DNA from: Trichoplax adhaerens
Taxonomy: Eukaryota > Animalia > Placozoa
Length of the DNA: 64,000 nucleotides
Reading direction: 5' to 3'
Assembly: GCF_000150275.1 (NCBI RefSeq)
Contig: NW_002060963.1
Span: forward strand, 591,262 to 655,261
Part shown: positions 687 through 36,895 of the stretch, piece by piece
Numbering within the stretch: position 1 is the stretch's first letter
Layout of the letters: every line of letters starts with the position of its first letter
Position numbers and translations under genes: made by a program
Notes under the pieces: model-generated
Databases searched by the model: none
Told to the model about the DNA's origin: nothing
What the model saw: the letters and a program-made list of their open reading frames with translations, nothing else

Positions 687-2813
687 ATGGTGAATGTATA
701 TGATCCTTGTTATTTTCCATTTTTTAGCTTACCGGATAAAATAATCTATGATATCTTTAATTTCTTATACGGAACTGACCTAGCTAAGCTTTGCTTGGTA
801 TCCTCTCAGTTCAATCATTGGATATTTGCTCGAAATCAACTTGCGTGGAAAGATGCGATCTATTCTGAATTAAGTACAAATCCAGTCTTGATAAGCCAAG
901 AAAGTTATCGAGATTTTTATAAGAGAGCCTATTTAGGATTATATCGGTGTATAATCGATAAAGTTTCAGAACGTAAAAAGTTGGGTATGGAACAGAAACG
1001 GAGTAGTGAAGATACGCCCAAATGTGTTTGGAGAAGCTCTTTTCTAGTTGAGAAAGAATATTCATATGGCCATTACTTAAAGCAAGAGAAAACACAACAA
1101 AACTCATCATGCATACGTGCTAATCTAGATCGACAAGATCGTTTACGCCGCTATTTGTGTACTGCAGCAAAACATGGTTACGAAGTTTGGGCAGCTACAT
1201 TATGCCATCAAGGGGCTAATATTTGTGGCCTCTATTTTACTCTTGGTCGTATTCATTTTGATAACTATGAAGATTATTTCTTGTGTCCATTATACTTTGC
1301 TACACTTGAAAATAATGAAAGAATGATTCAAAAAATTATAGAATTAGGAATTCGTTATCAATCGCCAAATCCATACTATATATTGCCATCGAATGATGCT
1401 AGTTTCGCAGAAGAAAATGCATCGGGTGATTATGTGACTTTTTCACTACATTTTTCAGATCTACAAGAAATGATTTGTAAAGTATTAATATGCATAAATG
1501 ATAATGCTGCCTTATTGGAGGCATTTTTAAATTCCTTGGATTTACCATCAATTCATCAAGCTGCAATCTATCAAAATATCGATGAATTCAGTAGATTTTT
1601 CGACTATAGTAGAAATTCTGATCTTAATGACATGGATCATTATAATATGACGCCTATAGTGTATTGCATATTGCTAAATCGAAAAGATATTGTTCGGTAC
1701 ATTTACAACTCAAGGACAGACATCATTGTTGGTCGTCGCTTAGCCGAATCTATTAAAACAGTATCAAGTAGTATTCCATATGATATGTTAAAAATTATAC
1801 GAGAACATGACAATAAATGCTATAAAGCTGTGGTATTTGGAATATTTGCTGATGAGAAAGTTTTTACTTCCGACAGATTTAAAGATGTACTTAGATTGAT
1901 CTTAATTGATCTCGTTGATGAAGATGTATTTTACGCTGCTTTTGACGGAGCTATTTCCTCTGGAAGCAATCAACTAATTAATTTATTAATTTTAGACTTA
2001 TTTACTTTTCTACGGTTATATATAACTTCAATCACTGATGTACAACGTTTATTTCAACAAATTACAAGTATAAGAAAGAAAGTTATTGTCAATCATGGTG
2101 AAACATTGCTTTGGAAGGCTCTACGCAGTGGACATCATGATTGTTTTCGACTATTAATTCTGAAGCGCGTTTCGTTATCTAAGCTTGCTGAAGGATATTC
2201 GGGGCTTCATTCTTTATGGTGGTTTTCATCAAATGTGTTGGCAATTTTACCTAGCAATATGACTGTTACAAGTAATATCAGATACGAACAGTTTCATCAA
2301 TTTCTATTACAGCTAAGAAACCCAGATTTGGATACTAATGCAATTGCTAAAACATTGCTACCTTATAAATTTGTAAAAGCAATTGTAGATTTACCTATAT
2401 ATATATTCCTGGAGCAATCGCGAACTATCGATGCATGGGCTGCCTGTAATACCTTTATAATTGGAATAATGTTATACATTATGTTGTATGATTGGAAACG
2501 TTCAATCTTTGCGGATCATCAACTACAGAAAAGACTGGAAAAAATCAGTTACACGCTATTAGAGAATTTATTGTCCCTGCAGATAAAATATTTTAACATT
2601 AACACTCTTGATAGTAGTTTTGGTGGTCGAGCAACTTTGTTACATATTGCAACACAGTTCGACAATCCAATGTGGGTAAATTTATTATTACAAGCAGGAG
2701 CGAATAGGCTAATTGAAGATAGTCTATCAAAGAAACCAATCCAATATGTTAAAGAAAGTGATAATAAGTGTAGATACTTACTAGAAAATTACCAATCATG
2801 TCCAAGACCTTAA
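687..2813 (+). CDS. F-box + ankyrin-repeat protein, copy A (708 aa, uninterrupted ORF)
   Basis: N-terminal F-box (FFSLPDKIIYDIFNFLYGTDLAKLCLVSSQFN...W). Ankyrin-like units: AAKHGYEVWA, CPLYFATLENN..IIELG, DHYNMTPIVYCILLNRKDIV, GETLLWKALRSGH, TLLHIATQFDNPMWVNLLLQAGAN. Collinear with the other cluster copies. Confidence 0.88.
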   Translation: MVNVYDPCYFPFFSLPDKIIYDIFNFLYGTDLAKLCLVSSQFNHWIFARNQLAWKDAIYSELSTNPVLISQESYRDFYKRAYLGLYRCIIDKVSERKKLGMEQKRSSEDTPKCVWRSSFLVEKEYSYGHYLKQEKTQQNSSCIRANLDRQDRLRRYLCTAAKHGYEVWAATLCHQGANICGLYFTLGRIHFDNYEDYFLCPLYFATLENNERMIQKIIELGIRYQSPNPYYILPSNDASFAEENASGDYVTFSLHFSDLQEMICKVLICINDNAALLEAFLNSLDLPSIHQAAIYQNIDEFSRFFDYSRNSDLNDMDHYNMTPIVYCILLNRKDIVRYIYNSRTDIIVGRRLAESIKTVSSSIPYDMLKIIREHDNKCYKAVVFGIFADEKVFTSDRFKDVLRLILIDLVDEDVFYAAFDGAISSGSNQLINLLILDLFTFLRLYITSITDVQRLFQQITSIRKKVIVNHGETLLWKALRSGHHDCFRLLILKRVSLSKLAEGYSGLHSLWWFSSNVLAILPSNMTVTSNIRYEQFHQFLLQLRNPDLDTNAIAKTLLPYKFVKAIVDLPIYIFLEQSRTIDAWAACNTFIIGIMLYIMLYDWKRSIFADHQLQKRLEKISYTLLENLLSLQIKYFNINTLDSSFGGRATLLHIATQFDNPMWVNLLLQAGANRLIEDSLSKKPIQYVKESDNKCRYLLENYQSCPRP

Positions 2814-4611
2814 GAGTCGAGATGTTTTCTCGTAAGTACTTTTGGTTAAGAATGTTATTGAGTGAATTAGTATTAATATTGTCATTGTACAAGCTAGGCT
2901 TAAAACTAATTTACTTCTAAAGAATCGAGTCAGCAATATATAGGTATCTTAGTAATGTATCATAGCGAACATGAAATTAAGCTTCTTGATTGGTAATTAA
3001 TAGAGTACAAATATGATGATGATGGCTTGACTAGAATAAAAATAATAATTCGATTAAAATTATAGTCATGATTGAATCTGAGCTAAACTGTAAATTAATT
3101 TATTGCGTAAAAACTGTATCGACTATGTATGGCACCATAGGTTTAATTTGATAATGTTCATTATTTCCATTAAATGATCAAAAATTTTTTTGGCTACTAA
3201 TATGGATAATTACAGTAGCTATAGGTAACTGGTTTTTAAACGTTTCATACGCGAAATTATCCATACTATTAAACTCAATTTAGTTAGATATGTTGTGGGT
3301 CGGAGTGTTGCGTATCCCGACCTCAAATTAAAACAAATACTGTACCTGCTAATATATATACGTGATAATTGTCACTTACAGGAGACATTTATAAATTCCC
3401 TGGGTTAACTTCGATTCCTCAAGCTACAATTTGCTATAATATTGATGATTATGGGCGACTATTCGAGTGTAGACAGGATATCTCAATAATTGATCCATTG
3501 TAAACAAAATCACGTCAAAAGTATTCTATCCTGTAAGTTTGATGGCATCAGTTGTTAGTTGTAGGATATACCATCTATAGTCATTTAGATAGAAATATGA
3601 ATGAGTGTATAGCTAAGTTAGTCTTCGAATGTTTGTATCCCTGTACAATTTTAATTATTAATACAGTACTCGTTGTAATTTAGCATTGGTTATATAGTAA
3701 ATTCATTTCTGAGCACCTCAAACGGGAAACCCTTTATGCAATCCATATACGGCAAAATATGTTAATGGATAACTTAAGGCGGGGCAATAATCAAGTAATA
3801 AGAGACAATTTGATTAATTTAAGAAAAATGAGCGCTGCTTGATGAATTGATTAATAGCAAGATTTTAACGATTAACGTTATAATGTGCATCATTAAGAAA
3901 AAGCATAGTAGCAAATTTTAAGGTAGTGGATATCAAAGCATCACAATTATATCAATTACAAGGACTCCTGAAGTTAGCAAAAATGCTTTTATAGCATATA
4001 GTAACTCTGCTTAGTGATTTAAAATAATTATATAATTATGAGATTAAGAACATAATTTGATGAAATTACTATTCCATCAGTAGCTTATACTTATAATTTT
4101 GTACAAGTGTACTTATTGCATATGAACACTAGTACAGTACATACTGATGTTTATGAATGTTGAGCTATCATGGCAAAAGGTAAAGCTCTGATAAATGTGA
4201 GAAATAGACTTTAGTAAGTTCAAGGCTTAACGTATGTCGATGTCTATCTATACTCAGAATATACAAGCTATCCTTCATTCTTTTTGATTAACCTAGATCA
4301 ACTTTGATAAAATATTAGCTTAATGCCTTGTTGCTTCGCTGATGGAGACACTACATTCACGTCTTTTCAAATTCGTACGTAAGGACAAGAACATTTCGAC
4401 AGTCTTATTCAACTTTAGATGAATGCTGCTTGGCTCAACAAATCAGAAGTTTAAAAGTAAACAATTAACTTAATACGTATATAGAAGCTATGTATTTGGT
4501 CTTTTACGACTTTACAGAATCGAATTCATGGATATCTTATCACCTCCCATTTTGAATTAGTTGCTCTTATAGTTCATTTTATAACTGGAATTGAGTCTCC
4601 ATACGACTAAA

Positions 4612-4980
4612 ATGACTGATGACTTGGATTTATTACACTTTCCATTACTTGATTTACCTGATGAGGCAAAACAGTAATTGGTTGATGACCTGCATTAATC
4701 AAACTCTTCATCATTTGATTTACCCAACAAGAAAAAAATGTCTAATGACTTGTATTCATCCTACTTTCCATTATTTGATTTGCCCGAAGAGTTCATTTAT
4801 CACATTTTCACTTCTTGTCCTGGAACTGATTTAGCCAGGCTTTGTATAATTTCTTAGTAGTTTAATTCTTTCATCCAAGCTCGATATCAGCTAGCATGGA
4901 AAGAAGCAATCTTTTCTGAATTAAGGACTAGCCCGATTATACTAAACGATAAAAACTATCAAAGTTTTTATAAGAGAGCT
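4612..4980 (+). pseudogene. F-box/ankyrin pseudogene: 5' F-box fragment with a triplicated start segment
   Basis: Reads MTDDLDLLHFPLLDLPDE..*, then a second degenerate copy, then from 4738 MSNDLYSSYFPLFDLPEEFIYHIFTSCPGTDLARLCIIS**FNSFIQARYQLAWKEAIFSELRTSP..YQSFYKRA. Homology stops at the LTR fragment. Confidence 0.85.
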
Positions 4981-5763: not shown

Positions 5764-5853
5764 ATGACTGATAACTTGGATCCATCTTATTTTCGATTAT
5801 TTGAATTACCCGATGAGTTAATTTATTACATATTAAGTTTTTTGTTGTGGTAA
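5764..5853 (+). pseudogene. F-box start fragment
   Basis: Reads MTDNLDPSYFRLFELPDELIYYILSFLLW*. The ~60 bp upstream resembles the sequence upstream of 4612. Confidence 0.75.
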
Positions 5854-6199
5854 TCCATCATTTTTTGATGTATTACAGAGTCACTCTTTGTTGAAGTAAA
5901 CTGAAATTTGAACATATTTTTGAATCGATGAATGGTCTTACTTGCTACACAAGCAACGACTAGGCATAAAACTTACATTAGTAAATCTTAGTTTAGGGAA
6001 GGTTTAATTCTTGTAATATTGCGATTAGTAGCGGTTGTGTAGTCTAAAAATAAATTTAATTGTTATTTAAGGACTCAATCTTGATATTTAAAGATTAATT
6101 TATTCTAGTTTTATAAATTTTAGTAATTAAGAATCATGTTAGGAATAAACTGGATGTAATTCATATTGCTAGTTAGTTTTAAGCAGGATTAAACTTCAC

Positions 6200-6640
6200 G
6201 TGATGAAAGTTACACGGGTGTATGATCGAGCATTTTCTAAAGCTAGCGTATCTAAAATATTTAAAGATGAAAATATCTTCAATTCTAACAGTAATAAAAA
6301 CAGGCTACAGTTGATTTTAATTGATTAAACTCGTGAAGATGTGTTTTATTCAGCTTGTCTGGTTACAATCTCTTCTCAAAGCCATCATGTAATTCATTTA
6401 TTAATACAGATTTACCAAAATTACTACGTTATACATAATTTTAGCCACTGATGTCTACCGTTTTTTAAAGCGAATTACACGTACAAAAGAAGCATGTATT
6501 ACCGATCATGGCAGAGAGTTTATCGAGCGATTAAATATAAGCAGTACGATCATATTCTACGATTGACTATAGAAGGCATTCAGTTATCTGTAGACAAGTA
6601 CGATTTGTTATGGCAACCTATGAAAACTTTTTTGCATGAT
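6200..6640 (+). pseudogene. F-box/ankyrin pseudogene, central fragment
   Basis: DNA collinear with ~9840-10290 (IFKDEN..., LTIEGIQLSVDKYDLLWQ), with stops and frameshifts. Confidence 0.8.
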
Positions 6641-8830: not shown

Positions 8831-10952
8831 ATGGATTATAATTTGGATCAAGATTGCTTTCCATTCTTTAGATTACCAGACGAACTAATTTATAAAATCT
8901 TCAGCTTGCTCTACGGAATCGACCTTGCTAGACTTCGCATGGTTTCGTTCCAGTTCAATGATCTTCTACTATCTGACGATCAGCTTGCATGGAGAAATGC
9001 AATCTATTCCGAATTAACTACAAATCCTCAGCCGCTATTGAGCGATGAAAGTTATTACAACTTTTATAAGAGAGCCTATTTAGGATTATATCGGTGTGTT
9101 GTTACTAAGCTTGCAGAAGATCGTATTACAAGTTTGGATTACGAGGCTTCATTTTTTCTTGAGAAAGAATACTCTTATTGTCAATATCTAAAGGAGAAAG
9201 AAACAACGCAGGAAGAAGAAATGCAACAAGGTTTATCGACCATGTACCGTTTGTATCATGGTTGTAGACAGTATCGCTTAGATTGTTACTTAATTTTAGC
9301 AACTAAACATGGCTACGAAATTTGGGCTAATAAACTATGCCAACAAGGAGCGAATGTGCATTGCCACAAACAAACAATCAGCCCATTAATTATGTCTATT
9401 CGTGAAAATAATGATACTATGATTAAGAACCTAATCGAATTAGGAATCCGTTATCATTTGTTAGATCCACAGTGCTTAGCGCGTTCGAATTCTTATGAGT
9501 GTGTATTTCATGTTATGGAAGTTTGCAAAGTATTAACATGCATACGTCATGATTCTCATTTATTACAGCCATTTTTAAATATTATTGATTTACCTTCAAT
9601 TCATCAGGCCGCAATCTTCAAAAGTATTGATGAGTTTCGGAAATATTTCGAAGATGGTAAATACAGTTATGCTAATCTCAAGCACTCGGATGCTTACGGA
9701 ATGACACCTTTAATGTATTGTATAATCTTAGGTCGAGATGATATCGTGAGTTTCATCTACGGCTTAAAAAAAAAATACCTTCATAGCAGCATTTTAAGTA
9801 AGTGTTGCAAGGCTATTTTAAGTAGAATTGAATTTAAAGTGTTTAAAGTTATACGGGTGAATGATCGGACATAAATTATACAAAGCTGTTATATCTGAAT
9901 TATTTAAAGATGAAAATTTTTTTACTTCTAATAGTATTAAAGACATACAACAACTGGTTTTAACTGACTTAACTCGTAAAGAGGTATTTTATACAGCTTG
10001 CTATGGGGCAATCACTTCTCGAAGCCATCATGCAATTCATTCATTAATGTCAGATTTACCGAAATTACTACAGTTATGCATGCTGTCAGCCACAGATATT
10101 CAACGTTTATTGAAGCGAATTACACGCACAAAACAAAAAGTTATTGCTCACTATGGTAGAGAATTACTTTTTCGAGCGATAGAATATGGACAAGATGCTT
10201 ATATTCTACAGTTGGCTATAGAAGGGATTCGGTTATCTGTGGACAATTACGATTTGTTATGGCAATCTATAAAAATTTTTTTGTACGATCATTATTTGCT
10301 TACTCCTTCGACTGTTATATATAAATTATCACCCATTTCGGCCGTTATAAACAATATCGACTATAGACGCTTTCATCAATTTATATTACGGTTGAGTAAC
10401 GAAGATTTCGATGCTAATAGTACTGTTGAAACATTACAGCTTTATAAATTAGCCAAAGCAATTTCTGATTTACCCATTACTCTGCCTCTAGATGTGTCGT
10501 TGGATAATTGTATAGTTGAAATAATGTTTGAAGTTATGAAAAATGCAGACTTGAGTTGTCCCCTCTTTCAGGACCATCAACTACAGAAAAGATTGGATGA
10601 AATCATTTACGTGCTGTTGGATAAGCTAATACATCTTATTAAAGACTACCATAATATTAACATTTGTGTTAACATAGGTAAGAATGTGTTTTATCAAGAA
10701 ACTCTATTACATCGTGCAGCTCGATATCAAAACCCGGCTTGGATAAGATTGCTATTGCAAGCTGGTGCAGATAGAGAAATTAAGGATAGCGGCCTGATAA
10801 AACCAGTGCATCATGCTGACAAATGGGATAGACATCAAATACCAATGCGAGTGCATACAGACAGGCAAATTCATCACGCTGGTGAATGGGCTCGTAACTG
10901 GGAATGTAGGCACTTATTGAGAAACCTTCAATCATGCCCACTGCCATCATAG
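8831..10952 (+). pseudogene. F-box + ankyrin protein, copy B, split into ORFs 8831-9874 (F-box half) and 9861-10952 (C-terminal ankyrin half)
   Basis: The two ORFs together are collinear with the intact paralogs. Removing 4 nt (TAAA, 9872-9875) gives NDRTLYKAV, matching DNKCYKAV and DFDCYKAV in paralogs. No other lesions seen. Confidence 0.8.
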
Positions 10953-11899
10953 GCGAACTACTGAAAGATTAACAAAGAAATATTGAAAATTAAAAATTTA
11001 ACTAATGAATCGATTCCGTCCTAAAGCTTGATTAACGAAAAGACAATGTGACAAGGATATTTATTAGAGAAATGTGGTATTACGGATTTATTCGATTATA
11101 ATCGCAATGAACACACAATTAAGAACGAATCATTTTTACAGTTTTAAAGATGCCAATTTGCTTTCAACTGCATTACTTAGCTATGCTGCTAAGAAAAATT
11201 GATAAAATGACATACCATTATAAACAAACGAGTGGAAATTATGCCACTATAGTAGCTGTTTCTACCGTATACATTGCCCTATACAGAACACTGCAGTTTA
11301 TTTTAATTATTATTACGAGTCAACTACTACCAAAATGTTATAAAATTTCATAATTTCATGATCTACGTTTAATAGCTTATTTTGCGGAGTTCCATTTATA
11401 CGTGCTCTAGTTTGATTATATCATACTGTCACATACAAGTAAGCTATTCTAATCACTCCGTTAGATTTTTAAACAATTCTCTCTTACTATATTTTCTACT
11501 TTATCAAAGCAATTCTAAATTATCTAACTTATTAATTAGTTCTGATAGCTATTCAGTGGGCATATTTGCTTACCTATCATAATTTATTATAGCTATCCGA
11601 TTAGATCAGATCATTTATCTACAGGGTAACCTAACAGTTTCTTTAAACACGGACTGAATAAATATTACGATTTTCTTCGATTAATTTTTTGGCAATTTCT
11701 TGGTACCATAGCAGACTCTCGATCTTTCGAAACTTGACAGTTTCCAATCATCTAGTCAATTTGATATAATTATTTACATCTTGCTACTACTGATGGTTAT
11801 AAGATTTGGTTTAAATTATGCAATTAATGAGTAAATCGTTAAAAAATCCTTATACGGGTTCCCTCACAATTCCAGTAAATAGCATTGATTATCTTAATC

Positions 11900-12517
11900 A
11901 ATCCACCTTCTACATTTTGTTACAATTGAAAAGAATACTACGATAGTTAAAAGAACAACTCTAACTGGGGATTCCTTATCAACCTTCAAATTTACGTTGC
12001 GCAAATTTCTGATTCACCCATTACTCTACCTCCAGATCTAACCATCGATAATTGTATAATTGAAATAATGTCAGATGTCATGAGTAACAATTGCTTACGT
12101 TGTCCACTCTTTACTGACCAACAACTACAGGAAAGATTGAATAAAATCATTTGAACGCTGCTAGAGAATTTAATGACTCTGACTAGATGCTGTCATTATA
12201 TCAATGCTCATATTAGCACATACTTGTATACTTATCAAATAGACAAGAATGGTCACCATTACGAAATTTTATTACATCTTGCAACTTGATATCAAAACTC
12301 GGCTCGGATCAGACTATTATTGTAAGCTGGCGCAGATAGAGAAATTGAGGATAGTAACCAGAGTAAATCAGAGGACTACGCTGATGGATGGCAAAGTAAT
12401 CTAACGCTATTTTAAGCGAATATAGGCAGAAAAATTGATCACGCTGGCGAATGGGCTCCTAACTGGAAATATAGACACTTACTGAAAGCGTATCAATTAT
12501 GCCCACTACCGTCATAG
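11900..12517 (+). pseudogene. F-box/ankyrin pseudogene, mainly the C-terminal part, most like copy B
   Basis: 12000-12517 is collinear with ~10460-10952 (DNCIIEIM, LLL*AGADREIEDS, HAGEWA, YQLCPLPS*) and shares the 3' flank taggcgaactactgaaa. Multiple stops. Confidence 0.85.
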
Positions 12518-13022
12518 GCGAACTACTGAAAAAGTAATTCAGATATTAAATAAACAGTAAACAGAACTAAGGGATTAATTTCCATTCTAAAGTTCGCTTA
12601 ACGTGATATTATTTAGTAGCAGTTGTCGTAGATTAATACTTTCTAAATCAATCTTGGATCAAAATAATGATCTATTATAAATACGAAATTTTTCAGTAAA
12701 ATGTATAGTCAAAATATTATTAAAAGTAAAATACACTCGGAAGGAGAAAATCCCCAGTGTATTTGTTTAGATAATAATAAGATCTGTATCTACGTCTTCT
12801 TGTCTAATATGGATCAACTTTAGTAATCTTCACTCGTCCTATTCAATTCTAAAAGAATACCATTAACTAATTCACTAATAGATAACAGAGAATAAAAATT
12901 GACGAAATTAAAAAAAATTGATGTTAGGGTCCATTCCTAGTTGTCATTATAATATCGAGATTGCGAAATAAATCTTGTTATTAATTATTTTAACTGATAG
13001 AATTACATTTTTTACAATCAAG

Positions 13023-13210
13023 ATGGGTGATAAATTGGATTTGTCATACTTATCATTCTTTAGCTTACCCAACGCACTAATTTATCACACATTTAAGTTT
13101 ATTCACGGAACTGACTTAGCCAGATTTTGTATGGCTTCTTTGCAGTTTTAATCATTTCATTTTGGCTCCATATTAGCGTGTATGGACATATGTAATCCGT
13201 TCTGAATTGT
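13023..13210 (+). pseudogene. F-box start fragment
   Basis: Reads MGDKLDLSYLSFFSLPNALIYHTFKFIHGTDLARFCMASLQF, then a frameshift to NHFILAPY*RVW...SEL. Confidence 0.8.
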
Positions 13211-14232: not shown

Positions 14233-14401
14233 CCTGAACAATAATTGTCTTTTCATAGTCAATAGATAATTCTATAGTGCTTTAAATCTTTTGCTATCTG
14301 AATGTTTTTGTGAAGGGCCTGACAAACAGAACATCAATAACTTCGATATTGAATGGAACTGTATATTAATCTTAGTACTGTGTTTCATACATAGTGTCCG
14401 T

Positions 14402-22570: not shown

Positions 22571-24631
22571 ATGGCAGATGAACATACCCTATCTTACTTT
22601 TCAATATTTACCTTACCCAACGAATTGATCGTTTACTTATTTCGCTTTCTTCATGGAGTCGATTTAGCCAGATTATGCATGGTTTGTCGTTGGTTAAATC
22701 ATTTTATAGCTCATGACGAAGTTACATGGAAGCAGACAATCCATGCTGAATTAACGACTAGTCCACTTATGTTAATCCATGAAACCCATAAAGACTTTTA
22801 CAAACGAGCATATTTAGGATTATACCGATATGTAACTGCTTTGGTAATACCGCCATTAGTCAAAGAATTCAACAACAGAGCTAAAAATGCCGATCATCAT
22901 GTAAGAAACTCATATTTTATTGAAAAAAATTACTCGTATGGTCATTATCTAAATGAATATGCACTACTGCACAATACCTCGATAATGGATGATCCTGATC
23001 GATCACTTCGTTTGTACTGTTATTTATGTGCTGCATCTAAACATGGCTACGAAGTTTGGGCTACCAAATTGTGCCAGCAAGGAGCTAAATTAACAGAAAG
23101 CAATATCAGTATCAAAGATTGGGTAATATACGATTGGTCATTTTGCCCATTAGGCTTCGCTACGTATGAAAATAATGTTGAAATGGTTAAAACACTCATT
23201 AAATTAGGAATTCGTTATCAATCACCAGATCCACAATATGTATTACAAATTGATAATAATCTTAGTATTGATTCACCAGTCCAGATAGCTGCTTTAGTTG
23301 CTTTGCGAGGTATTATTTGCAAAGTATTGGTAAGCATACGTGATGAAGCTTACCTGTTAAAGGTGTTTTTAAAGTCTTTAAGTTTACCTTCTTACTATCA
23401 AGCTGTTTTTCAAGGTGATCTCCATGAATTGAATAGACTAACAAGGGATAGTCAGGTCGATCTTGATACATTCGATGATTATTATATGACAGCTTTATCA
23501 TTTTCCATATTAATAGGTCGCGAAGATGTTGCTCGCTACATTTACAAATTGAAAAAGAACGTTTTAATTGGTAATTGTATAGCTGATTTTGTCGGAGTTG
23601 CATTAGCAGATATTGAATTCAAAGTGTTGGAAATTATACGAGAACACGATTTCGATTGTTATAAAGCTGTTGTATTTAATATATTTGCAGATGAGAAATA
23701 TTTTACTGCTAGTAGTCACAAAGATGTATTGCAAATCATTTTATCAGATTTAAATGATGAGAACATATTTTACGAAGCCTGTCAGAGTGCAATCACTTCT
23801 CAAAATAGTCGCATAGCCTTACTATTATTATCAGACTTGCCAAAATTATTACAATTACGTATGAATTCAGTCAATGATGAGCAAGAATTATTACGACAAA
23901 TTGTCTCCACAAGAAAGAATGTGATTGCTAATTATGGGAAAGAGTTAATATTACATGCAGCAGCATTCAGGCAAGGTCATTGCATTCGAGTATTAATTAC
24001 CAATGGCGCTCCATTATTGGAGGTTATAGATGAGGTAACAGAATATTCATGTCAATATTTGGGTTCTTTCATCGAAATACCAAACTACTTTGTTATTGCA
24101 AGTAATAGCAAGTACAAACTACTACATCAGTTTCTATGGCAATTAAGTAATGCAAATTTTGACGTTAATGCAATAATTGAAACGTTACAATTTTATACTT
24201 TTGCAAAAGAAATTGCAGATCTACCTATTTGTCAGACCACAAAACAAGCTCTTAATAAAATTTTACCCCAAATAATATTGCGCATTATGCATTGCGATTG
24301 GAGAAAAGCCATCTTGATGGATAGCCAATTACAGACACGACTCGATAAAATCAGCTATACACTGCTTGAAAATTTGATGTTTCTTAGTCAAAATTATGAT
24401 GTAAATGCTCGTCATAGATGCAATATTCATCCTGGAGACACAGCATTATTCATTGCAGCTAGATCTGGAAATGTAGCTTGGATACAACTTTTTCTTCAAG
24501 CAGGTGCTGATAGGCAAATTAAGAATTATTGCCAGGAAAAACTAATTCATTGCATTGGAAAACCATCTAAAGAGTGTATGCATTTGATAAAAAATTACAA
24601 TTCATGTCCATTACCATCAAAGCCGTATTAA
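22571..24631 (+). CDS. F-box + ankyrin-repeat protein, copy D (686 aa)
   Basis: F-box IFTLPNELIVYLFRFLHGVDLARLCMVCRWLN. Ankyrin units include GDTALFIAARSGNVAWIQLFLQAGAD. Confidence 0.88.
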   Translation: MADEHTLSYFSIFTLPNELIVYLFRFLHGVDLARLCMVCRWLNHFIAHDEVTWKQTIHAELTTSPLMLIHETHKDFYKRAYLGLYRYVTALVIPPLVKEFNNRAKNADHHVRNSYFIEKNYSYGHYLNEYALLHNTSIMDDPDRSLRLYCYLCAASKHGYEVWATKLCQQGAKLTESNISIKDWVIYDWSFCPLGFATYENNVEMVKTLIKLGIRYQSPDPQYVLQIDNNLSIDSPVQIAALVALRGIICKVLVSIRDEAYLLKVFLKSLSLPSYYQAVFQGDLHELNRLTRDSQVDLDTFDDYYMTALSFSILIGREDVARYIYKLKKNVLIGNCIADFVGVALADIEFKVLEIIREHDFDCYKAVVFNIFADEKYFTASSHKDVLQIILSDLNDENIFYEACQSAITSQNSRIALLLLSDLPKLLQLRMNSVNDEQELLRQIVSTRKNVIANYGKELILHAAAFRQGHCIRVLITNGAPLLEVIDEVTEYSCQYLGSFIEIPNYFVIASNSKYKLLHQFLWQLSNANFDVNAIIETLQFYTFAKEIADLPICQTTKQALNKILPQIILRIMHCDWRKAILMDSQLQTRLDKISYTLLENLMFLSQNYDVNARHRCNIHPGDTALFIAARSGNVAWIQLFLQAGADRQIKNYCQEKLIHCIGKPSKECMHLIKNYNSCPLPSKPY

Positions 24632-26423
24632 TTATCCTCTGCTATATAAAAGTCTCTAATTTACGATGTTACATTTACGGCCAATATTGAAATAATGTAT
24701 TTTACTAATGTTATAGATTGAAACTTACAGAGATTAAAAATAACGAACGTGTAACTGAATTTGATCTCTTTAATTTCTCGACTGTAATAACTTGGACTCT
24801 AAATTTTGATAATTTCTTATTGTCAACGGGAAACCGCTAGTACTGACTCTGCATTACTATTAAATATTATCTTCAGTCATAAAATCTCAATTTTATATAA
24901 ATGTAAGCAAATCTATTAATTATTATCTAAGTGAACCTTAATTCATGTTACCAAGATAATATAAAGAATAAGATATCGATATTAACATTGATGAAGATGC
25001 AGATAAAATGGTTAATATTTAATTCCAAGTTGCATCGACTAACCAAAAATAGCATATGCTACAATTGTAAATTAAAATTCTGTAGTAACTGATTATTTAT
25101 AATAATTATTTCATTTACCTTGAAAAGTATATTGTTTACTATTATAGAATATATGAGTGCGGAATTAATAATCTTAGGTATCATGTTTCTATCTCAGGTT
25201 GAGCAATTGGAATCGCTATAATGATCATCATATCACCATCGATCTTGTACTAAATACATAATCAAGGCCCAATTATTTTTGTTTATGTCGGTTAAAATTG
25301 CTGTTTACCACCAGGCATATTGAATGTACGTATCGTTAGGTATAGAAACTTATCTCTGATCTTCAAATGGCTTAATTAATATCCTAATCGCAATTTAATT
25401 TAGGTTCAAAGCCGATTCACTTGCAAAATTAGCAATAATTCATTTGTAATTTCTTCGCAAAGACTGTAATAGATTCCCTTGTCTTTGAAACAAAAACTGC
25501 AGCTTAAAATTATGCCTATAATAAGTACTCGTTATAAGCGTACTTCACGTTGGAAGGTACGTCAGAATAGTGCTCTTTTAATAGGATAATAAAAGTTGAC
25601 ATCAGTAAATTCATAACATTAAGCGGCAAGCTGAGAATAGTGATTTGGTATAACTCAATGCATGTACATGATCTACTACAGCAAGGTCTAGACGAAATCA
25701 ATTACCCACTAAGCGTTTGAAACAAAGTGCCTTAACGTGAGTAATCTATCGTCTAAGACTCGAATCTAAGTTTGGTTGATTAAAGAGTGCTTAGAGTTAG
25801 TTGCTTAGATAGTTAAGTCTACTTTAGAGGAAAGAATCCCGTTTAATTCTTGTGTTACAATCTCGGTTGTGACAATAACTAATAACGTCATGCCTTATAG
25901 TAATATAAGTTTGATACAGCAGCCTTTATTAAAGGAACCATTTATTTAAAGCAAATCATCTGTGATATAATGTAGACAATTATCATTATACAAGATTTTA
26001 ATTCCATCACAATAAATATCAAACACATTAGTAATTTATATATTCATTATAATCTTCATAACTTAATGCTAGGTTCCGTAGGAAATTACGCCTATTAATA
26101 GACTGAGATAAACTAGATACAGCTAAGGATGTTAAAATTAAGCATAAATAATACAGGATAAAACTATTGGATGGCTTGACGTTGAATGAAACTAATAGTC
26201 TAGGTTTAGAAACATGCCGTCAGCGAAGATGGTATGATGAGATTCTAGTAACCAAGGAATAATTGGCTCGGAATAAAGGCAACTAGCGCAATCGGCGATT
26301 AGCTGAGTAATAAGATCGCATTTTAATAGGGTTTCAACGGCATTAACTAATTTATTATTTACTTAGTAGAAAGTAACGGCAGTTCATTTTTATTAGATAC
26401 TAATAGTAACAGTAGTATTCCGC

Positions 26424-28168
26424 TCTATCTAATTCTCTTGTATGAGATACATATTCATCATTTTTTAGAATCAGATAGTGAATCTATAGTAGAATGTTAT
26501 AAAAAGACGATATGAGATTAAGGTAAGGGAATTGCCTAAGGCTATATTTGTCACACAGAAGAAGGTAACATAGGCTAGAATATAGACGATAGTTTACGTT
26601 CTTAATGTTATCTGTATTAGTGTAATAGTAACTAAGATTTATGATAGTAGAACTCTCAACTACTAAGTAAAAGACTCTCCCTTTCTTCTAATCTTTCTAT
26701 GTAATTCAAGATGTGTGACCTTTCGTAAGGATATTACCTTTACTCATCCCTTAAAAGATCGAGGCAGAGTATTTATAAGTACCGTTTAATATCTTCAATT
26801 ATACAGTAGTTCAAATTTGTATAACACTGTATACAAATCCTATAATATTTTAAGCTTAGTACTTCTTTCAGTGGTAACAAATCTTTCAAATCGACTTTGC
26901 ATGCAAACTTTATATATGAGTCATAGAATTCACTTGTTATTTACTAAAATCCCTAAGTATTCTTACATTCCTTCCAAATAATGGCGACGCAAAGATGATA
27001 AATAGGAGCAAAGCTCCCGCAATTCCATTCAGGCATATAATTGGGACTAATGGATTATTGTATCCTTAGGGAATTGTTGCGTAAGTAGGAGTAGAACTCT
27101 TGTAGTTCCATTTAAGCGTTCAAATGGAAATAACAAACTATTGAATCCTTAGTGAATGGCTGCCTAAATAGTAGCACAGCTCTTATAGTTCCATTAAGGC
27201 ATTTAATTAGGGGTCACAAATTATTAAATCCTTAGAGAATTGTTGCGCAGTATTTACTGGCGTATTATATATTCTGAGATATTATACTGCAGAGTAGACC
27301 TCCTCGAATAAATCTTAAAATTTGAACATATCGCTACGTTTGAAAAGCTCTTATCCTTGCAAAATAAATTTATAGCAGCAAAAGTAATATTCTGTTCTAT
27401 CTAATTCTCTTGTATGAGATACATATTCATCATTTATTAGAATCAGATAGTGAATCTATAGTAGAATGTTATAAAAAGACGATATGAGATTAAGGTAAGG
27501 GAATTGCCTAAGGCTATATTTGTCACACAGAAGAAGGTAACATAGGCTAGAATATAGACGATAGTTTACGTTCTTAATGTTGTCTGTATTAGTGTAATAG
27601 TAACTAAGATTTATGATAGTAGAACTCTAAAATACAAAGTAAAAGACTCCCTTTCTTCTAATCTTTCTATGTAATTCAAGATGTGTGACCTTTCGTAAGG
27701 ATATTACCTTTACTCATCCCTTAAAAGATCGAAGCAGAGTATTTATAAGTACCGTTTAATATCTTCAGTTATACAGAAGTTCAAATCTCAATAACACTGT
27801 ATACAAATCCTATAATATTTTAAGCTTAGTACTTCTTTCAGTGGTAACAAATCTTTCAAATCGACCTTGCATATGGAGTTCTAACATGAATTGTAGTGTT
27901 CATTTTGTTATTTACTGAAATCCCTAAGGGTCTTTACATCCCTTCCAAATAATGACAACACAAAGATGATAAATAGGAGCAAAGCTCCCGCAGTTTCCTT
28001 GAAGCATATTATTGAGAATAACAAATTATTAAATCTTTAGGGAATTGTCGCGCAGTTTTCGCTGACGTATTATATATTCTAAGATGCTATATAAGAGAAT
28101 AGACCTCCACGAATATATCTTAAAATTCGAACATATCGTAACGTTTGAAGTGTCCTTATCCTTGCAAA
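26424..28168. repeat. Tandem segmental duplication, units start at 26424 and 27396 (offset 972 bp)
   Basis: First ~480 bp of the two units are near-identical and the remainder is clearly more diverged. Unit 1 has extra internal sub-repeats at ~27040-27250. Confidence 0.9.
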
Positions 28169-29787
28169 AAAAAATTCGAAGGTAAAATAAAAACTATTTA
28201 CGGCTACATTAAATTTTTATGTATAACAGCGTTATGTAATGCGATTATGACTTAGTAGATTATTTATAACTTTACTAAAATGAATATCTATAAAATTATA
28301 CAGTAATAAATGCCCCCAAACTATTCTATCCAGTCTAAAAAATTAAAATCCTCTTAGTTTATAGTCTCGAGATAGAATTTGAGAAGACTTTCCTAGATTT
28401 TTGGAATAGTAGAGTATTAATAGCAACAAGAATCTTGTGCAAGCTATCCTGTCTCAAAGTGAACTGAAGTCCAAGCTCCTATCTTTAGTTCTTAAATATA
28501 TTTGTTGCAATCTATTACAGCCACAAAGTGGGCTATATTCTGGCCTAAGTCGTAAAATGAAACGCTTCTCCTCAAATAGTTAATCAATCTTGTTACTGTA
28601 ATAAGACCACCGAAGTAATACCACCCCAAATTAGCAGAAAGTGAAGCATATAAACTACTTCAATTAATTGAAAATTAGGCGTGGTGTTAAATCTGTTTTT
28701 ACAAGCAAGGTGTCATTACGTTGGAGTTCTTTAATTTACTACCTGTTCAGTAATTCTATCTCTAGGCGTTCCTTAACTCACTAGTCTGAAGAGTACTTGA
28801 ACGCTTACTCTGTCGTGAATTCTGTAAGAAACGGCATTATCGAAAAGTAACGTGCTTTTAATTTACAGTAGCGCCAAGCTTTAGTGTCCAATAAAACATA
28901 CAGGAATTTTACTCAATAAATTGAGCTCTTTATTCGATTTTACCAAGCTTTCCTGATGCCAATAAAGTAAACGTGAATTATTAATACAAGACGGCTTATC
29001 AAAATTTTTAATATTGCTCGCTAACGAAAAGTAACTTAGTCACTACTCATTCTATCCGACGTGAAAAAATTTATCATACGGTATTTGGCCACTTTTTTCA
29101 ATGATGTAATTCTATAGTTATATTAACGAGGTCTAGTATGGCTTGTACATAAATTAAAAACGCCCCAAAATCATAATAAACTATCTTGCACTTCCCTTAA
29201 GTAACTAAAAAAATTTTAGACAATATATCATGTTAATGGACTTCTGAATTTATTGACAGTATTGACTATTCGGTAAAGACAGTTACATGTTTATAATTCT
29301 ATTCATCGAAGGAATAAATTACAAATTAAGGATTGTATTTATAAATGAATATCATGTGATTTCTGAGTACAGAATGAGTTGACTATAATCATCTCAAAAG
29401 GTGAATGTCAATCTGCATTGTTATCGTAAACTAATTAAATCTATCATTGTAGTTGATGAATAAATTATCTGTTGCCTTCTTGTTCTTCATGAATAAGATG
29501 AATGTATGTTATTATCTTTGAAAATTAATGGTATATGCTAATAAAAAATTTTAGTTTTATAGCATCGTAAGCTACTTTAATTATTGAAACAAGTTACGAT
29601 AATGTTTTTAGTGATTCGATAAAATGTCGATATTTGAAAATTAAAAATCATTTTTAAATCTAAGGCATCCATTTAGTTACATAATAACCATGAATTAAAA
29701 TGATATTACTGAAAAAAAATGTTCAAAATTACTGTCTTTAAATTAACTGAAAATCTTAAAATTTTATCTTTTTGTGACGATCCAGCC

Positions 29788-29973
29788 ATGAAAGCATACA
29801 TCTCTTTGATTGCCCTTTTGTTCCTCGCTGTCATTGTGGCAGCACGCAACATTCATGAAATTTCAGATGAAGATATTGAAGAAGCAATGAAGGTATTAGA
29901 GTTTGCTGAAAATGAAAAGAATGCCGCTGATGAGGAGAATGATGAAAACGAGGCTGATTCCGATCTACCCGAC
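29788..29973 (+). CDS. Secreted prepropeptide, first coding exon (signal peptide + acidic propiece)
   Basis: Pyrimidine-rich acceptor-like ...tccag|ccATG. MKAYISLIALLFLAVIVAA is a signal peptide, followed by RNIHEISDEDIEEAMKVLEFAENEKNAADEENDENEADSDLPD. Canonical donor GTAAGT at 29974. Confidence 0.75.
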
Positions 29974-30249
29974 GTAAGTGTCCATACTTATAGTGAAAAC
30001 TTCGAGTTACTTTGCAATAAGCGATTAATCTACCCCTTGGACGTGTTATGTTGTATCACTCCTTGTAGCTGTAAACTTTAACAGTAAAAGTCAAATTTCA
30101 TAACATTCCTAACAGTACTTAAATTACAGCAATCGATGCTTGTGTACACCTGCGTACTGACAATAGCCTGTTTATAGCACCCTATGTCCATTAACTGTGC
30201 GTACACATTCGAAATTCAGCATGACTACTAATTTAGAAATTATATTAAT

Positions 30250-33200
30250 CAGCTGACTTTAATTATATTATCTACAAATATATGCCGAGTGATACTAGTA
30301 TAATTTTCAGTAAGTTAATTATATATAACCTATACATAACTTGCTGAAAATAATAACAATTGCGTTTATATATGTCAATCGCTTATATAACTCCAAATAC
30401 GAACTGGCAAAATACTTTACAGTCATTTCAAAATAACACAAAATCTATATGTACTCGTACTCTAACTACCGTATGTTCGTATATTAAGTGTATTTATTAT
30501 TATTATCATCGTGTACTTGTGCCATACTTGTATGTTTATATATATTACTAACTGTAAATAATTTTCTTAAACTCACATATATATCAATGGATATAAACGC
30601 TTCCGACAAATCTAAATTGGACTAGATCGTAAGTCTATATTAACGTATTATTTTAGATTACATTTGTACAATATTAGACTGAATGGCAAATAACTGATAA
30701 ATTATTTGCCAATGTCTGTATATTTCTACATAGCATACTGAAAATAATAAGTACGTTAACAAATTTCGATTGCCTATATAACTTCAAATGTAGTCTTACA
30801 AAATAGTTTACAGTCATATGAAGATAACACATAATCTGCATATACTCGTACTCTAACTACTATATTTATATTCCGTGTATTTATTATCATCGTCGTTGTA
30901 TACTTGTATTGTACTTGCATGTTTAGATATTACTAAATAATTTTCTTAAACTCACATATCTATACAGTCGATTTGGAAACTGTTGGAAAACTACAATCTA
31001 ACTAGCAGGTAAGTTTTGTTATTAAAGACTATTTAGATTACATTTTTACAGTATTTGGCTGAATAAGAGATAAGTATAATCAATAGCTTGCTTACCAAAG
31101 TCTGTACTACTGTATTTATATTACGTGTGTTTCCAATTACCATCGTTGCGCATTTGTGCCGTGCTTGTGCGTTTGTGTGTCACTAAATAATTTTCTTAAA
31201 TTCATATATCTATGCAATCGATATGAACTCTTTGACAAATCCAAATCGAATTAACTAGAGGGTAAGTTTATATGACCGCTTCTTTAGATTATATTTGTAA
31301 AGCATTTGACTAAATTACAAAAAATTGATAACTTGCTAGCTAACGTATTTATATTTCTGTATAACTTACTAGAAATAATAAGAGCTACCTATACATATGT
31401 CAATCGCTTATATAGCTCCATATGCAAACTTACAAATTATTTTACAGTCATTTTAAAGATAATACAGAATGTGTATATATATTCATTCTCTAACTACTGC
31501 ATATATATTTCGTGCATTTATCATTATCGTCGATGTGTCCTTGTACCTCACTTTTACGTTTACTTAGTACTAACTATAAGTAACTTTCTTAAACCCACAT
31601 ATCTATACAATCAATACGGACTCTTTGATAAATCTAAATTGAAACAATTAGAAAGTAAGTCTACGTATATATTAACGTATTATTTAGATTACATTTGTAC
31701 AATATTTGACTGAATTACAAATAATTGATTGATAGATTATCATCATCGTTGTGCATTTGTATCGTACTTGTGCGTTCATGTATTATTAATTATCTATAAT
31801 TTTCTTAAATTCACACATCTATGTAACTGATATGGACTCTTTTGGTAAATCTAAATCGAACTCAATAGACCGTAAGTTTACATTAGGATTTTGTTTAGAT
31901 TATGTTTGTACAGTATTGTATCGAATTACAAATAACCGATGGCTTTCTTGTCAATGTTTATGTTTCTATATAACTTACTGAAAATAATAACTCCGTTTAT
32001 CACTTCAATCGGTAGCGTAACTGAGCATAAGAAGTAGTATATGGTTATTTTATACGTAATCCAGAATCTATATATACTCGTACTCGAACTACTATATTTT
32101 GTATTATGTGTATTTATTGTCATCATCGTTATATACTTGTGCGTTTATATATCACTAAGTGCAAGTAATTTTTAAACTTATGTATCTATGCAATCGATAT
32201 GAACTCTTTGGCAAATCTAAACCGAAATATATAGCGCGTAAGTCTATATTACGTTCTATTTAGATTACATTTATGCAGTATGTGACTAAATTACAAATAA
32301 TCGATAGCTTGTTTTTCAATGTCTGTATGTCTACACAAACCTACTGAAAATAATAACAACTATGTTAGTACATGTTACTCGGCTACATAACTGAGCATAC
32401 TAAATAGTATGTGGTTATTTTATACATGATACAGAATCTGTATATATTTGTACTCTAACTACGGTATTTACGTTATGCGTATTTATTGTCATCATCGTTG
32501 TGTACTTATGTGTTTATGGATTACTAACTATAAAAATTTTCTTAAATTCATGTATCTATGCAATCGATGTGAACTCTTTGGTAAATCTAAATCGAAATAT
32601 ATAGCATGTAAGTCTACGTTATCGCTCTATTTAGATTATGTTTGTGCAGTGTTTGACTAAATTACAAATAATCGATAGTTTGCTTTTCAATGTCTGTATT
32701 TTACACAAACTTACTGAAAATAGTAATAGCTGCGGTAGTATATATCACTCGGTTACATAACTGAGTATACGAAATAATATGTGGTTACTTTATACATAAT
32801 ACAGAATCTGTATATACTCATACTCTAACTACTGCATATATTATCATTGTTGTGTGCCTATACCGCACTTGTGCATTTATGTATTACTAACTGTAACAAT
32901 TTTCTTAAACTCATATATCTATGCAATCGATATGAACTGGCAAATCTAAATCAAAATATATAGCGTGTAAGTCTACATTAACGCTTTATTTAGATTAAGT
33001 TCGTGCAGTATTTGACTAAATTACAAACAGTCGATAGCTTGCTTGTCAATGCCTATATCTACACAGCTTACTAAAAATAATAACAACCGCGTTAGAACAT
33101 GTAACTCGATTACATAACTGAGCTTACGAAATAGTATATGATTATTTTATACAAACTACATAATCTGAAAATGCTCTTACTCTAACTACTGTATTATCAT

Positions 33201-33700
33201 CGTTGTGCGCTTTTATCGTACTTGTGAGTTTACGTATTACTAACTGTAAATAATTTTCTTAAACTCACATATATGTTAATGGATATGAATTTTTTTGACA
33301 AATCTAAATCGAACTCAATAGACCGTAAGTTTAAATTAACATATTATTTAGATTATGTTTGTAGAGTATTTGACTGAATAACAAATAATTGATAAATTAT
33401 TTGCCAATATTTGTATATTTCTATATAAATTACTGAAAATATAACAACTGCGTTTATACATGTCAATCACTTATTTAACGCCTCATATAATCTTATATAA
33501 TAGTTTACAGACATTTGAAGATCGTACTTATGCGTTTATGTATCACTAACTATATGTAATTTTCTTAAACTCACACATCTATGCAATCGATTGGACTTTT
33601 TTAACAAAATCTAAATTGAACTTAATAGAGCGTAAGTCTATATTAGCGTTATATTTAGATTGCATTTGTACAGTATTTGAGTGAATTACATATATATAGA
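30250..33700. repeat. Complex tandem array, ~360-390-bp unit with shorter deletion variants, about 10 units
   Basis: Anchor aaatctaaa...atttagattacatttgtacaatatttgactgaattacaaat recurs near 30608, 30990, 31237, 31630, 31848, 32214, 32584, 32942, 33300 and 33608. Confidence 0.9.
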
Positions 33701-35119: not shown

Positions 35120-36895
35120 TACGTACTTGCCTACTGCAAATACTTGATAGAAAAAGGATATAAAACAATAAAATTTTCATCATATGATGATGCATATCGT
35201 CCTAACGACAAGAACGCTTATGATGTTGCTTAAGTTTAATAGCCAAACATGCTTATAAAATTTGGACTAATAGACTATGCCTGAAAGGAGCTAGTGTTGG
35301 AGGCACCCACTTCTTAGTTGTTATGCCCGAACCATACTCTGTGCCTCGACTTCGCTTCGGTCCAAATCACTATAATTTCGTCTTTCCATTATGTTTTCCT
35401 GCATATGAAAATAATCATACCATGATTAAGAACCTTATTCAATTATAAATTCCCTATCAACGGTCAAATCCACATTATATATCGGTAGCCAAATTTTAGC
35501 TCTGATATCTTTAAAAGAGAAGACGAACCTTGGTCAAACCGAAATCCTATCATTTGTAAGGTGCTAACATACATCCGTTCTAATCTTCGCTTATTGCACG
35601 CATTTTTAGCTTTCTTGACTTTATATCAAATTCATCGGGCTGCGATCTCCAAAACTTTAGATGAATCCACTAGATTTGTTAAAGGCGGTAGAAATTTTTC
35701 GTGCCGATTTGGATTCTAAGGACGATTATGATATGACATCCTTAATTTATTGCATAATATTAGGTCGGGAAGATATTACTGTACTTGCTCGCTGTATGGA
35801 TTAAGGAAAGGACTTCATGTGGTTGGTTTAGCTCATGTCTTAGCAACTGCATTAAGTAACACTACATTAAAGGTATTAAAAGTTATGCAAAAACAGGATT
35901 ACTCATTCTATAAAGCTATTGTATCTGAAGTATTTAAAAGTGGAAGTACCTTTACCACTAAAAGCAAGAAAGACGTACTAAAATTGATTTCAACTGAATT
36001 AATTGAAGAAGACGTATTTCATGTAGCTTGTCTGGTTGCAATCTCGTTTCCAAACAGTCATACTATTGATCTGTTGATATCAGATTTTCCAATACTATTA
36101 AAACCATGCATAAATTTCGATCTACGGTATCCAACATTTCCTACCGGTAATTGCACTTGCTAGAAAGCAAGTCATTACTAATCATAACGCAGATCTAGTT
36201 TTAGATGCATGCAATCATATGGATATAATTATGATTGTACTCGACAATTGATTATAGAAAGTGTTTAATTATCTTCGAAAGGACACATCTTTTCTTAATA
36301 ATATACGGTTTAGATGCCTTACTTTATTTAATACGGAATTTTTGAAAACTGGGATACTTATAAAGAGTTTCATCAACATCTATTACAATTAAGTAAAAGA
36401 GTTCGATGCTGATATTATTGTTAAAATGTCACAACCTTATAAACTTGCAAAAGCATGTTCAGATCTACCAATGTTGCTAGCCCCAATGTAACTATCGGCA
36501 AAGTTATCATTGCAATGATGACGATGATTATGGTTTCAGAACACGAAAACTTTTCCTTTACTAATTAGCTTTTACAGAAACGACATGATGAAATAATTTA
36601 TGCACTGCTACAAAATCTAATAGACCTTCTTAGAGACGATAATACTATCAATAGTTGTCATGGGTTTGAACCATTTAGTCAAGAAATTCTATTACACGCT
36701 GTAGCTCGTTTGGCGAACCCATCTTGGGTAAAATTATTATTGCAAGCAGGTGCAGACCGGCAAATTGAAGATCTTGAGGGGAATAAAGCAATCCAATGTA
36801 TCAATCTATCATTCTTTGCCGAAAGAAAAAAAGTAATGGCTCCAAGAATGCTCATATTTATTGACAAGTTATCAATCATGTCCGCTGCGATCAAC
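35120..36895 (+). pseudogene. F-box/ankyrin pseudogene lacking the F-box end, otherwise near full length
   Basis: IAKHAYKIWTNRLC, AYENNHTMIKNLIQL, FYKAIVSEVFK, LLHAVARLANPSWVKLLLQAGADRQIEDL, LLTSYQSCPLRS. Many stops and frameshifts. Confidence 0.88.

Follow-up and report, generated by a model that had tools for sequence, protein, structure and literature searches.

An old tandem array of predicted SCF substrate receptors combining an F-box with an ankyrin solenoid in Trichoplax adhaerens

The 64-kb window of the Trichoplax adhaerens H1 genome analysed here (scaffold C1394:591262-655261; "the window" is this whole stretch of DNA, and positions are counted from its first nucleotide) contains most of a tandem array of intron-free genes coding for proteins with an N-terminal F-box followed by a long ankyrin body. 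Its full-length loci lie head-to-tail in the order U, A, B, C and D, where U is located just upstream of the window and B is a pseudogene, and they are interspersed with remnants of further copies. We interpret this array, with fair confidence, as an old and slowly turning-over tandem subfamily of substrate receptors of the Skp1-cullin-F-box (SCF) ubiquitin ligase, built from an F-box and an ankyrin solenoid.

According to this interpretation, the F-box would bind Skp1 within the Skp1-Cul1-Rbx1 ligase, and the solenoid of ankyrin repeats would present a protein substrate for ubiquitylation, much as in ASB and FEM1 receptors except that the cullin would be Cul1. Successive tandem duplications, unequal and in part incomplete, would have built up the array long ago, probably earlier than its separation from the lineage of P0162, a related protein from Logan/ENA data; since then it would have evolved slowly under purifying selection and lost copies. 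The first-pass annotation of this DNA had also seen SCF substrate receptors here. The layout that such a role presupposes is upheld by Pfam, by profile matches to FBXO31, Skp2 and Fbw7, by the model of the N-terminus and by the ankyrin solenoid, and the role is most likely and well founded, with Skp1 binding, ligase function and substrates being what we infer from that layout.

Literature searches by locus tags and by the combination of Trichoplax, F-box and ankyrin returned no description of this family, whose 13 genes represent roughly 30% of the F-box loci of an animal that is among the simplest. If its members are SCF receptors, no other lineage-specific set of ubiquitin-ligase specificities in placozoans would be as large, and they would be a natural place to seek placozoan-specific regulation, possibly including control of intracellular symbionts; an old and constrained array, largely common to strains, nevertheless lowers the expectation of an arms-race system.

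Domain architecture

Pfam detects an F-box-like or F-box domain at residues ~13-55, plus Ank, in every full-length copy. Using the gathering score of PF12937 or PF00646 as the criterion, the F-boxes of U (35.7 bits), D (31.2 bits) and B (26.6 bits) are above the 24.3-bit cut-off, as are those of most paralogs dispersed elsewhere in the genome, and the F-boxes of A and C align with the other copies residue for residue. Neither the L-P pair nor the hydrophobic core positions vary among the 13 intact paralogs, which share the N-terminal signature LP.E.I..I...L.G..LA.L..VC..F...I.....LWK..I..ELT..P.LL..E.Y..FYKRAYLG; the part that follows the F-box, W..I..ELT..P.L...E.Y..FYKRAYLG, is a family signature of the linker helices. 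A profile of the 13 N-termini, compared with PDB sequences, matched FBXO31 best (7.5e-9), followed by Legionella AnkB (2.1e-6) and then by Skp2, Fbw7, FBXO3 and others. In an AlphaFold2 (AF2) model of the first 140 residues, the predicted local distance difference test score (pLDDT) is 80-86 over residues 11-80, and the top Foldseek matches of this model in PDB are nearly all F-box chains of SCF/Skp1 complexes, with a root-mean-square deviation (RMSD) of 1.1-1.7 A over 36-48 residues, and of ~3 A over 72-89 residues to Fbw7 with its linker. By alignment and by model, the N-terminus is a canonical F-box of three helices that continues into linker helices.

The body beyond residue ~140 is predicted to be a single long, degenerate ankyrin solenoid of ~550 residues. 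Ank_2 scores 44-55 bits in A, C and D, versus a cut-off of 27.3 (1e-13 in A), and a PDB sequence search with the ankyrin body returned ankyrin repeats only. The AF2 model of full-length D, based on an 18-sequence family alignment, is all-helical, with pLDDT of 83 and a predicted template modelling score (pTM) of 0.83, and its Foldseek matches are ankyrin-1/-2 and DARPins (probability 1.00), DARPin fusions, tankyrase, FEM1B/C and ASB11. The ankyrin units had initially been described as dispersed because Pfam detects only the best-kept repeats of a degenerate solenoid.

Two other candidate features did not hold for the family. A hydrophobic insert in A (~residues 585-605), considered as a family transmembrane segment, is missing from the other copies, and a conserved C-terminal Cys (..NYQSC..), considered as a CaaX-type lipidation motif such as that of AnkB, is not at position -4 with aliphatics in most copies.

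The machinery that such receptors would use is encoded in the same genome. Skp1 is found at C1411:5813323-5814326 (C-terminal and POZ parts), with its coding sequence distributed over five or more short exons of no more than 65 aa, and cullin matches occur at at least five loci, taken together without telling the Cul1-type apart. Another Skp1 copy with identical scores, on the small contig C1191 (6911-7913), probably reflects redundancy of the assembly or a haplotype left unplaced, rather than a second gene.

Comparison with known F-box and ankyrin systems

On all features examined, in sequence and in predicted fold, the proteins qualify as F-box proteins of the FBXO class. With the SCF receptors FBXO31, Fbw7/Cdc4 and Skp2 they share an N-terminal F-box of ~45 residues with an L-P start and three helices, a linker, and a C-terminal binding domain; FBXO31 is the closest by sequence, and the F-box plus linker of Fbw7 is the closest by predicted fold. 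They differ from FBXO31, Fbw7 and Skp2 in that the binding domain is a ~550-residue degenerate ankyrin solenoid, and not WD40, LRR or the FBXO31 beta domain, and in that the genes lack introns and have multiplied in tandem in placozoans. We know of no combination of an F-box with a long ankyrin solenoid among the named animal FBXW, FBXL and FBXO families.

An ankyrin solenoid serving as the substrate arm of a cullin-RING ligase is also characteristic of ASB proteins (ankyrin plus SOCS box) and FEM1 proteins (ankyrin/TPR plus VHL box). Their box, however, sits at the C-terminus and has Elongin B/C with Cul2 or Cul5 as its partners, while the Trichoplax box is an N-terminal F-box with a predicted Skp1/Cul1 partnership; Pfam scans of the cluster and the dispersed members revealed no SOCS box. 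AnkB from Legionella pneumophila (PDB 5k35) likewise has its F-box at the N-terminus and the ankyrin repeats behind it, but this protein is only ~170-180 residues long with few repeats, and its likeness to the Trichoplax family is limited to the F-box. Poxvirus ankyrin/PRANC proteins likewise form multigene families and combine ankyrins with a Skp1-binding F-box-like motif, although in the reverse order, with N-terminal ankyrins and a truncated PRANC box at the C-terminus. No Pfam PRANC match was obtained in family members, scans with the family motifs detected no relative in IMG/VR, and the likeness seen in Atlas is generic to ankyrins.

The same two domains co-occur in Ascomycota proteins, which are shorter (215-568 aa) and whose Atlas clusters score 0.94-0.97 by language-model features only, a likeness short of a specific sequence relationship; overall, the Atlas searches returned only generic ankyrin and F-box clusters, without taxonomic resolution. 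With regard to genomic behavior, the Caenorhabditis fbxa/fbxb genes and plant F-box families offer the nearest parallel, as they too show lineage-restricted expansion, tandem clusters and many pseudogenes. Those families have hundreds of members, turn over fast and experience positive selection in the substrate domain. The Trichoplax family, in contrast, has 13 members and old duplicates, with dN/dS uniform at no more than ~0.35, and at least five of its members each have a single counterpart at 61-74% identity in sequences that are probably of placozoan source.

Age of the duplications and selection

The cluster paralogs are 41-52% identical to each other. Nei-Gojobori (NG86) estimates on the codon alignment yielded a mean nonsynonymous divergence (dN) of 0.39 and a synonymous divergence (dS) of ~1.0-1.3 in every region, which is near saturation. 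When regions are compared, dN is lowest in the F-box (0.30) and reaches 0.39-0.41 in the others, and since dS is near saturation, the dN/dS value of ~0.35 or less obtained throughout is an upper bound only. The pattern proposed in the first-pass annotation, with a conserved F-box and diversifying ankyrins, is not what this region-wise comparison shows, and its assumption of rapid turnover is not supported, given the age of the paralogs and the synteny of the array in Trichoplax sp. H2. As judged from the codon alignments, the cluster is under long-term purifying selection.

The phylogenetic tree recovers the cluster as a monophyletic group in which C pairs with B and A joins this pair, and B has the longest branch of the cluster. 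The Logan/ENA protein P0162 is placed within the cluster as a sister to U (support 96/98), so that the duplications would predate the split from the P0162 lineage; on this topology they are probably older than that species split.

The gene order is the same in Trichoplax sp. H2 (TrispH2_005598 to TrispH2_005603), where A corresponds to TrispH2_005599, C to TrispH2_005602 and D to TrispH2_005603, and the largest ORFs of the window are ~100% or 100% identical to hypothetical H2 proteins, with one ORF also matching TRIADDRAFT_61261 of T. adhaerens. Pseudogene B is annotated in H2 as two proteins of 317 and 363 aa, the first of which carries an additional truncation caused by an earlier stop. As B is broken in both H1 and H2, its frameshift is not an assembly error. 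The first-pass annotation had called B recently frameshifted: the frameshift is there, but "recently" can be understood only in a relative sense, given that B is also split in H2. Residues on either side of the frameshift are missing from the JGI model TRIADDRAFT_61263 (669 aa), and databases therefore list this pseudogene as an intact F-box protein.

Residue differences between H1 and H2 number 4/687 in U, 10/708 in A, ~9/676 in B, 1/724 in C and 8/686 in D, compared with 1-4 differences in three dispersed paralogs. The replacement level of A and D is 2-10 times that of C, U and these three paralogs, and replacements are locally clustered in A (residues 305-335) and in U (residues 427-432). 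Variants of gene C among four sequencing runs include 4 synonymous versus 3 nonsynonymous ones, which points to constraint on this gene.

Family size and relatives outside the cluster

About 45 genomic loci match the F-box-like model, and 13 of them are long single-ORF genes with F-box and Ank: U, A, C and D of the cluster, and nine dispersed members (C1402, two; C1409, two; C1412, two; C1413; C1410). Five other long F-box ORFs (L014-L018) were considered and proved to be unrelated to the family. A T. adhaerens database entry assigned to scaffold C1394 has the same sequence as protein C.

When 1.84 billion representative proteins were searched with a profile, the matches other than generic ankyrin proteins were all Trichoplax and Logan/ENA members; generic multi-repeat ankyrin proteins predominate in this whole-library search, and ~15 rows are true family members. 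The first-pass annotation had anticipated that stable orthologs would be lacking. Instead, five members have one best counterpart each among the Logan/ENA proteins, namely U (P0162, 61%) and, of the nine dispersed genes, C1402b (P0007, 70%), C1412b (P0029, 74%), C1409a (P0093, 66%) and C1409b (P0012, 68%). Such identities fit the divergence between placozoan genera, and these five proteins are probably orthologs, likely from another placozoan. Two more distant Logan/ENA proteins, P0079 and P0114, group with C1413. So far, the family is confined to Trichoplax and to Logan/ENA sequences, the latter probably from other placozoans. A search specific to D (residues 1-135) matched only U and A, and scans of the genomes of 185,579 bacterial and archaeal species and of IMG/VR with family motifs taken from the four-copy alignment detected no relative, a negative that is limited by being pattern-based.

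Transcription of gene C

Expression data were read for the 6-kb region around gene C, and they show that this intact copy is transcribed. In RNA-seq run X20 the transcript is represented by one 2913-nt contig (14740-17652, + strand), which includes the whole ORF without any joint and extends ~580 nt upstream and ~160 nt downstream of it; run X19 also has contigs over 14740-17652. As a control, RNA depth in X19 and X20 is zero over most of the 12.5-14.5 kb interval, every bin of which is covered in DNA run X2. Because the RNA contigs are jointless and the neighboring DNA-covered stretch is silent, gene C is transcribed as an unspliced mRNA. The expectation that intact copies would be expressed is thereby confirmed for one of them.

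Run X15, which is of uncertain type, exhibits the same pattern over C and has a low-depth contig running from within B to 12716, suggesting that the B pseudogene region is weakly transcribed; the fragment at 11765-12514 is thinly covered by RNA-like contigs. Two repeats lie near the apparent 5' end of the gene C transcript, a 59-bp tandem repeat of 9.4 copies just upstream of it (13667-14236) and a 112-bp tandem duplication at this end (14583-14801, 95% matches), and both may be associated with the promoter or the 5' untranslated region.

Strength of the interpretation and alternative explanations

Several observations weigh against an old, constrained subfamily of SCF receptors. The F-box-like scores of A (21.2 bits) and C (20.2 bits) are under the 24.3-bit Pfam cut-off, and the N-terminal model taken alone is of moderate confidence (pLDDT 66) and has weak Foldseek E-values (best 5.6e-3), the domain being short. 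The dN/dS values are region averages over 4-5 saturated sequences, with site models outside their reach. An alternative tree that unites all Trichoplax copies in one clade is worse by 6.3 log-likelihood units, yet the approximately unbiased (AU) test does not reject it (p = 0.086), and protein searches with the window ORFs or with residues 1-135 of D turned up no orthologs of A, C and D outside Trichoplax; in view of these two results, the timing of the duplications is only probable. The replacement rates of A (1.4%) and D (1.2%) between H1 and H2, which are protein-level values only, are about the same as that of pseudogene B (1.3%), and could reflect relaxed or diversifying selection, or a higher local divergence. 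Finally, the expression evidence covers one intact copy, gene C.

The first-pass annotation had interpreted the family as rapidly diversifying SCF receptors for foreign proteins of symbionts, pathogens or viruses, acting in innate defence, and we regard this as unlikely. Tandem expansion with many dead copies, a share of roughly 30% of the F-box loci, and the failure to find A, C and D orthologs outside Trichoplax are all in line with it, and for the bacteria that live inside Trichoplax cells a possible role of their ankyrin proteins as effectors has been suggested (PMC6879607). The sole observation that keeps the defence idea alive, however, is the replacement rate of A and D, which per residue equals that of pseudogene B in the comparison of H1 with H2, with some replacements clustered. 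Against the defence reading, the paralogs are of old age (41-52% identity, dS ~1-1.3), dN varies little over the length of the protein and dN/dS is ~0.35 or less, H1 and H2 have a common gene order and a broken B, five members (U and four dispersed ones) each have one best counterpart at 61-74% identity, and synonymous variants in C outnumber nonsynonymous ones. Moreover, a paper on placozoan immunity does not mention F-box or ubiquitin. The first-pass annotation had itself named four outcomes that would speak against its proposal, namely lack of Skp1 binding, uniform purifying or neutral evolution across domains, stable one-to-one orthologs in related species, and lack of expression of the intact copies; at the resolution reachable in this analysis, two of these, uniform constraint and single counterparts elsewhere, were observed. 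A rapid, diversifying defence system is not supported; no link of the family to immunity was found, and the idea of foreign or symbiont targets is without positive evidence.

A narrower version, which we consider doubtful, would restrict this role to the younger members A, D and perhaps C, acting as placozoan-specific SCF receptors under relaxed or diversifying selection that capture bacterial or viral proteins. In its favor are the pseudogene-like rate at which A and D change and the failure to detect orthologs of A, C and D outside Trichoplax. If true, the A/D/C set would be a role-reversed animal counterpart of the F-box/ankyrin effectors of Legionella and poxviruses.

It is equally doubtful that the proteins are not ligase receptors at all, their F-box being degenerate or repurposed (for Skp1 sequestration or non-SCF complexes) and the solenoid a plain scaffold, with some copies drifting to loss. 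The sub-threshold F-boxes of A and C, the strain-level change of A and D, comparable to that of pseudogene B, and the many dead copies in the cluster would fit such a scenario, and Skp1 binding is itself predicted from sequence and models only. Against it stand the invariance of the L-P pair and the hydrophobic core in the 13 paralogs, the lowest dN of all regions being in the F-box (0.30), the match of the predicted fold to Skp1-bound F-boxes, the transcription of C, and the maintenance of open ~2.1-kb ORFs at 31% GC, where stops arise easily.

Horizontal acquisition of an effector-type gene, bacterial (AnkB-like) or from a giant virus, with subsequent spread, would explain the lack of introns (all 13 members are single long ORFs, and the Skp1 and cullin genes of the same genome have many exons) and would agree with AnkB being the second-best PDB sequence match of the N-terminal profile (2.1e-6) and with poxviral ankyrin clusters scoring 0.92-0.93 in the Atlas feature search, but it is very unlikely, as GC content (31-33%) does not differ from that of the remaining window sequence, the F-box is matched best by eukaryotic proteins (FBXO31, Fbw7), the AnkB superposition is poor (rank 40), the motif scans of IMG/VR and of genomes from 185,579 species of bacteria and archaea detected no relative, the library profile search gives only generic multi-repeat ankyrin matches beyond the family, and probable orthologs in what is likely another placozoan would make any transfer ancient.

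Organization of the array and neighboring sequences

We mapped the copies by comparing a profile built from four intact copies with the six-frame translation of the window, and tblastn with the long ORFs gave the same map. The window has a GC content of 31-33% and few long ORFs. All family matches are on the + strand and comprise 3 intact genes, 1 frameshifted copy, 1 badly decayed near-full copy and ~9 shorter remnants, in agreement with the initial count of about 12 same-strand copies or fragments. The F-box, which had been ascribed to all of them, is found only in the full-length copies and in three N-terminal fragments. Likewise, the copies in the interval 687-36895 initially assigned to the array are confirmed, but the array begins before the window: full-length gene U (TRIADDRAFT_61261, 687 aa) is at -3666..-1633, i.e. 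1.6 kb upstream, and a C-terminal scrap lies between U and the window start (-1058..-921).

The first gene in the window, A (687-2813), is an intact single-exon F-box/ankyrin ORF of 708 aa with a profile score of 1211 bits. To its 3' side there is a tentative weak remnant at 3295-3485 (profile 240-304; two colinear matches with independent E-values, iE, of 0.069 and 0.44), followed by three clearer pieces: a broken N-terminal, F-box-bearing fragment at 4738-4980 (profile 1-81; iE 1e-9 and 2.5e-13), which has two TAG stops within and is 56% identical to A by tblastn; a short N-terminal fragment at 5764-5844 (profile 1-27; iE 5.4e-7); and a mid-gene pseudogene fragment at 6176-6613 (profile 349-496; iE 8.7e-10, 3e-4 and 9e-3), which changes frames and has internal stops. 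Pseudogene B (8831-10952) is full-length and consists of ORFs of 347 and 363 aa, matching profile positions 4-366 and 367-689 in two frames, with a single frameshift near 9866-9872. It is followed by a C-terminal pseudogene fragment at 11993-12514 (profile ~549-689), whose span becomes 11765-12514 if one weak extra match (profile 150-169) is included; DNA at 12239-12538 is 75% identical to the 3' end of B (10674-10973).

An N-terminal F-box fragment at 13023-13148 (profile 1-42; iE 5e-12), with 58% identity to D, precedes gene C (15320-17494), an intact single-exon F-box/ankyrin ORF of 724 aa, which has a tentative weak colinear remnant on its 3' side at 17855-18563 (profile 153-384; iE 0.021, 4.4 and 0.061). 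Gene D (22571-24631), also an intact single-exon F-box/ankyrin ORF, of 686 aa, is flanked on the 5' side by a weak colinear remnant at 21452-21825 (profile 304-432; three matches with DNA spacing equal to profile spacing) and on the 3' side by a single match at 25628-25719 (profile 576-603; iE 1.4) with 61% DNA identity to the corresponding block in other copies, both of them tentative. The profile scan detected no family-like sequence between 25.7 and 35.2 kb. The last copy, at 35206-36893, is near-full but heavily decayed: it matches profile positions 152-689 in eight segments and three frames, with 14 + 3 stops, is 30-36% identical to A, C and D, and its F-box part is undetectable.

As first proposed, copies have been both born and lost here, since the cluster mixes intact, frameshifted and decayed ones. 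N-terminal scraps are located 5' of intact genes and C-terminal scraps 3' of them, which points to growth and decay of the array through unequal, often partial tandem duplication.

The window contains further repeats. A short multi-copy element occupies 13212-13289, where contigs of four runs break and their flanks differ, and DNA depth there climbs from ~40 to 105; it is probably a dispersed repeat. Farther downstream, a direct duplication of ~530 bp (26405-26935 versus 27377-27905, 970 bp apart, 92-96% identity) is far younger than any F-box gene duplicate of the window, and a 370-bp tandem repeat of ~4.7 copies is found at 31764-33465 (77% matches), with related copies across 30.3-33.7 kb. 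A 120-aa ORF at 29719-30081, which is outside the F-box family, has a signal-peptide-like start and an acidic stretch. Finally, ~23 kb 3' of the array, at 59917-60897 (+ strand), there is a single-exon G-protein-coupled receptor gene, an intron-free 326-aa ORF with a full rhodopsin-family seven-transmembrane domain (PF00001, 1.1e-17).

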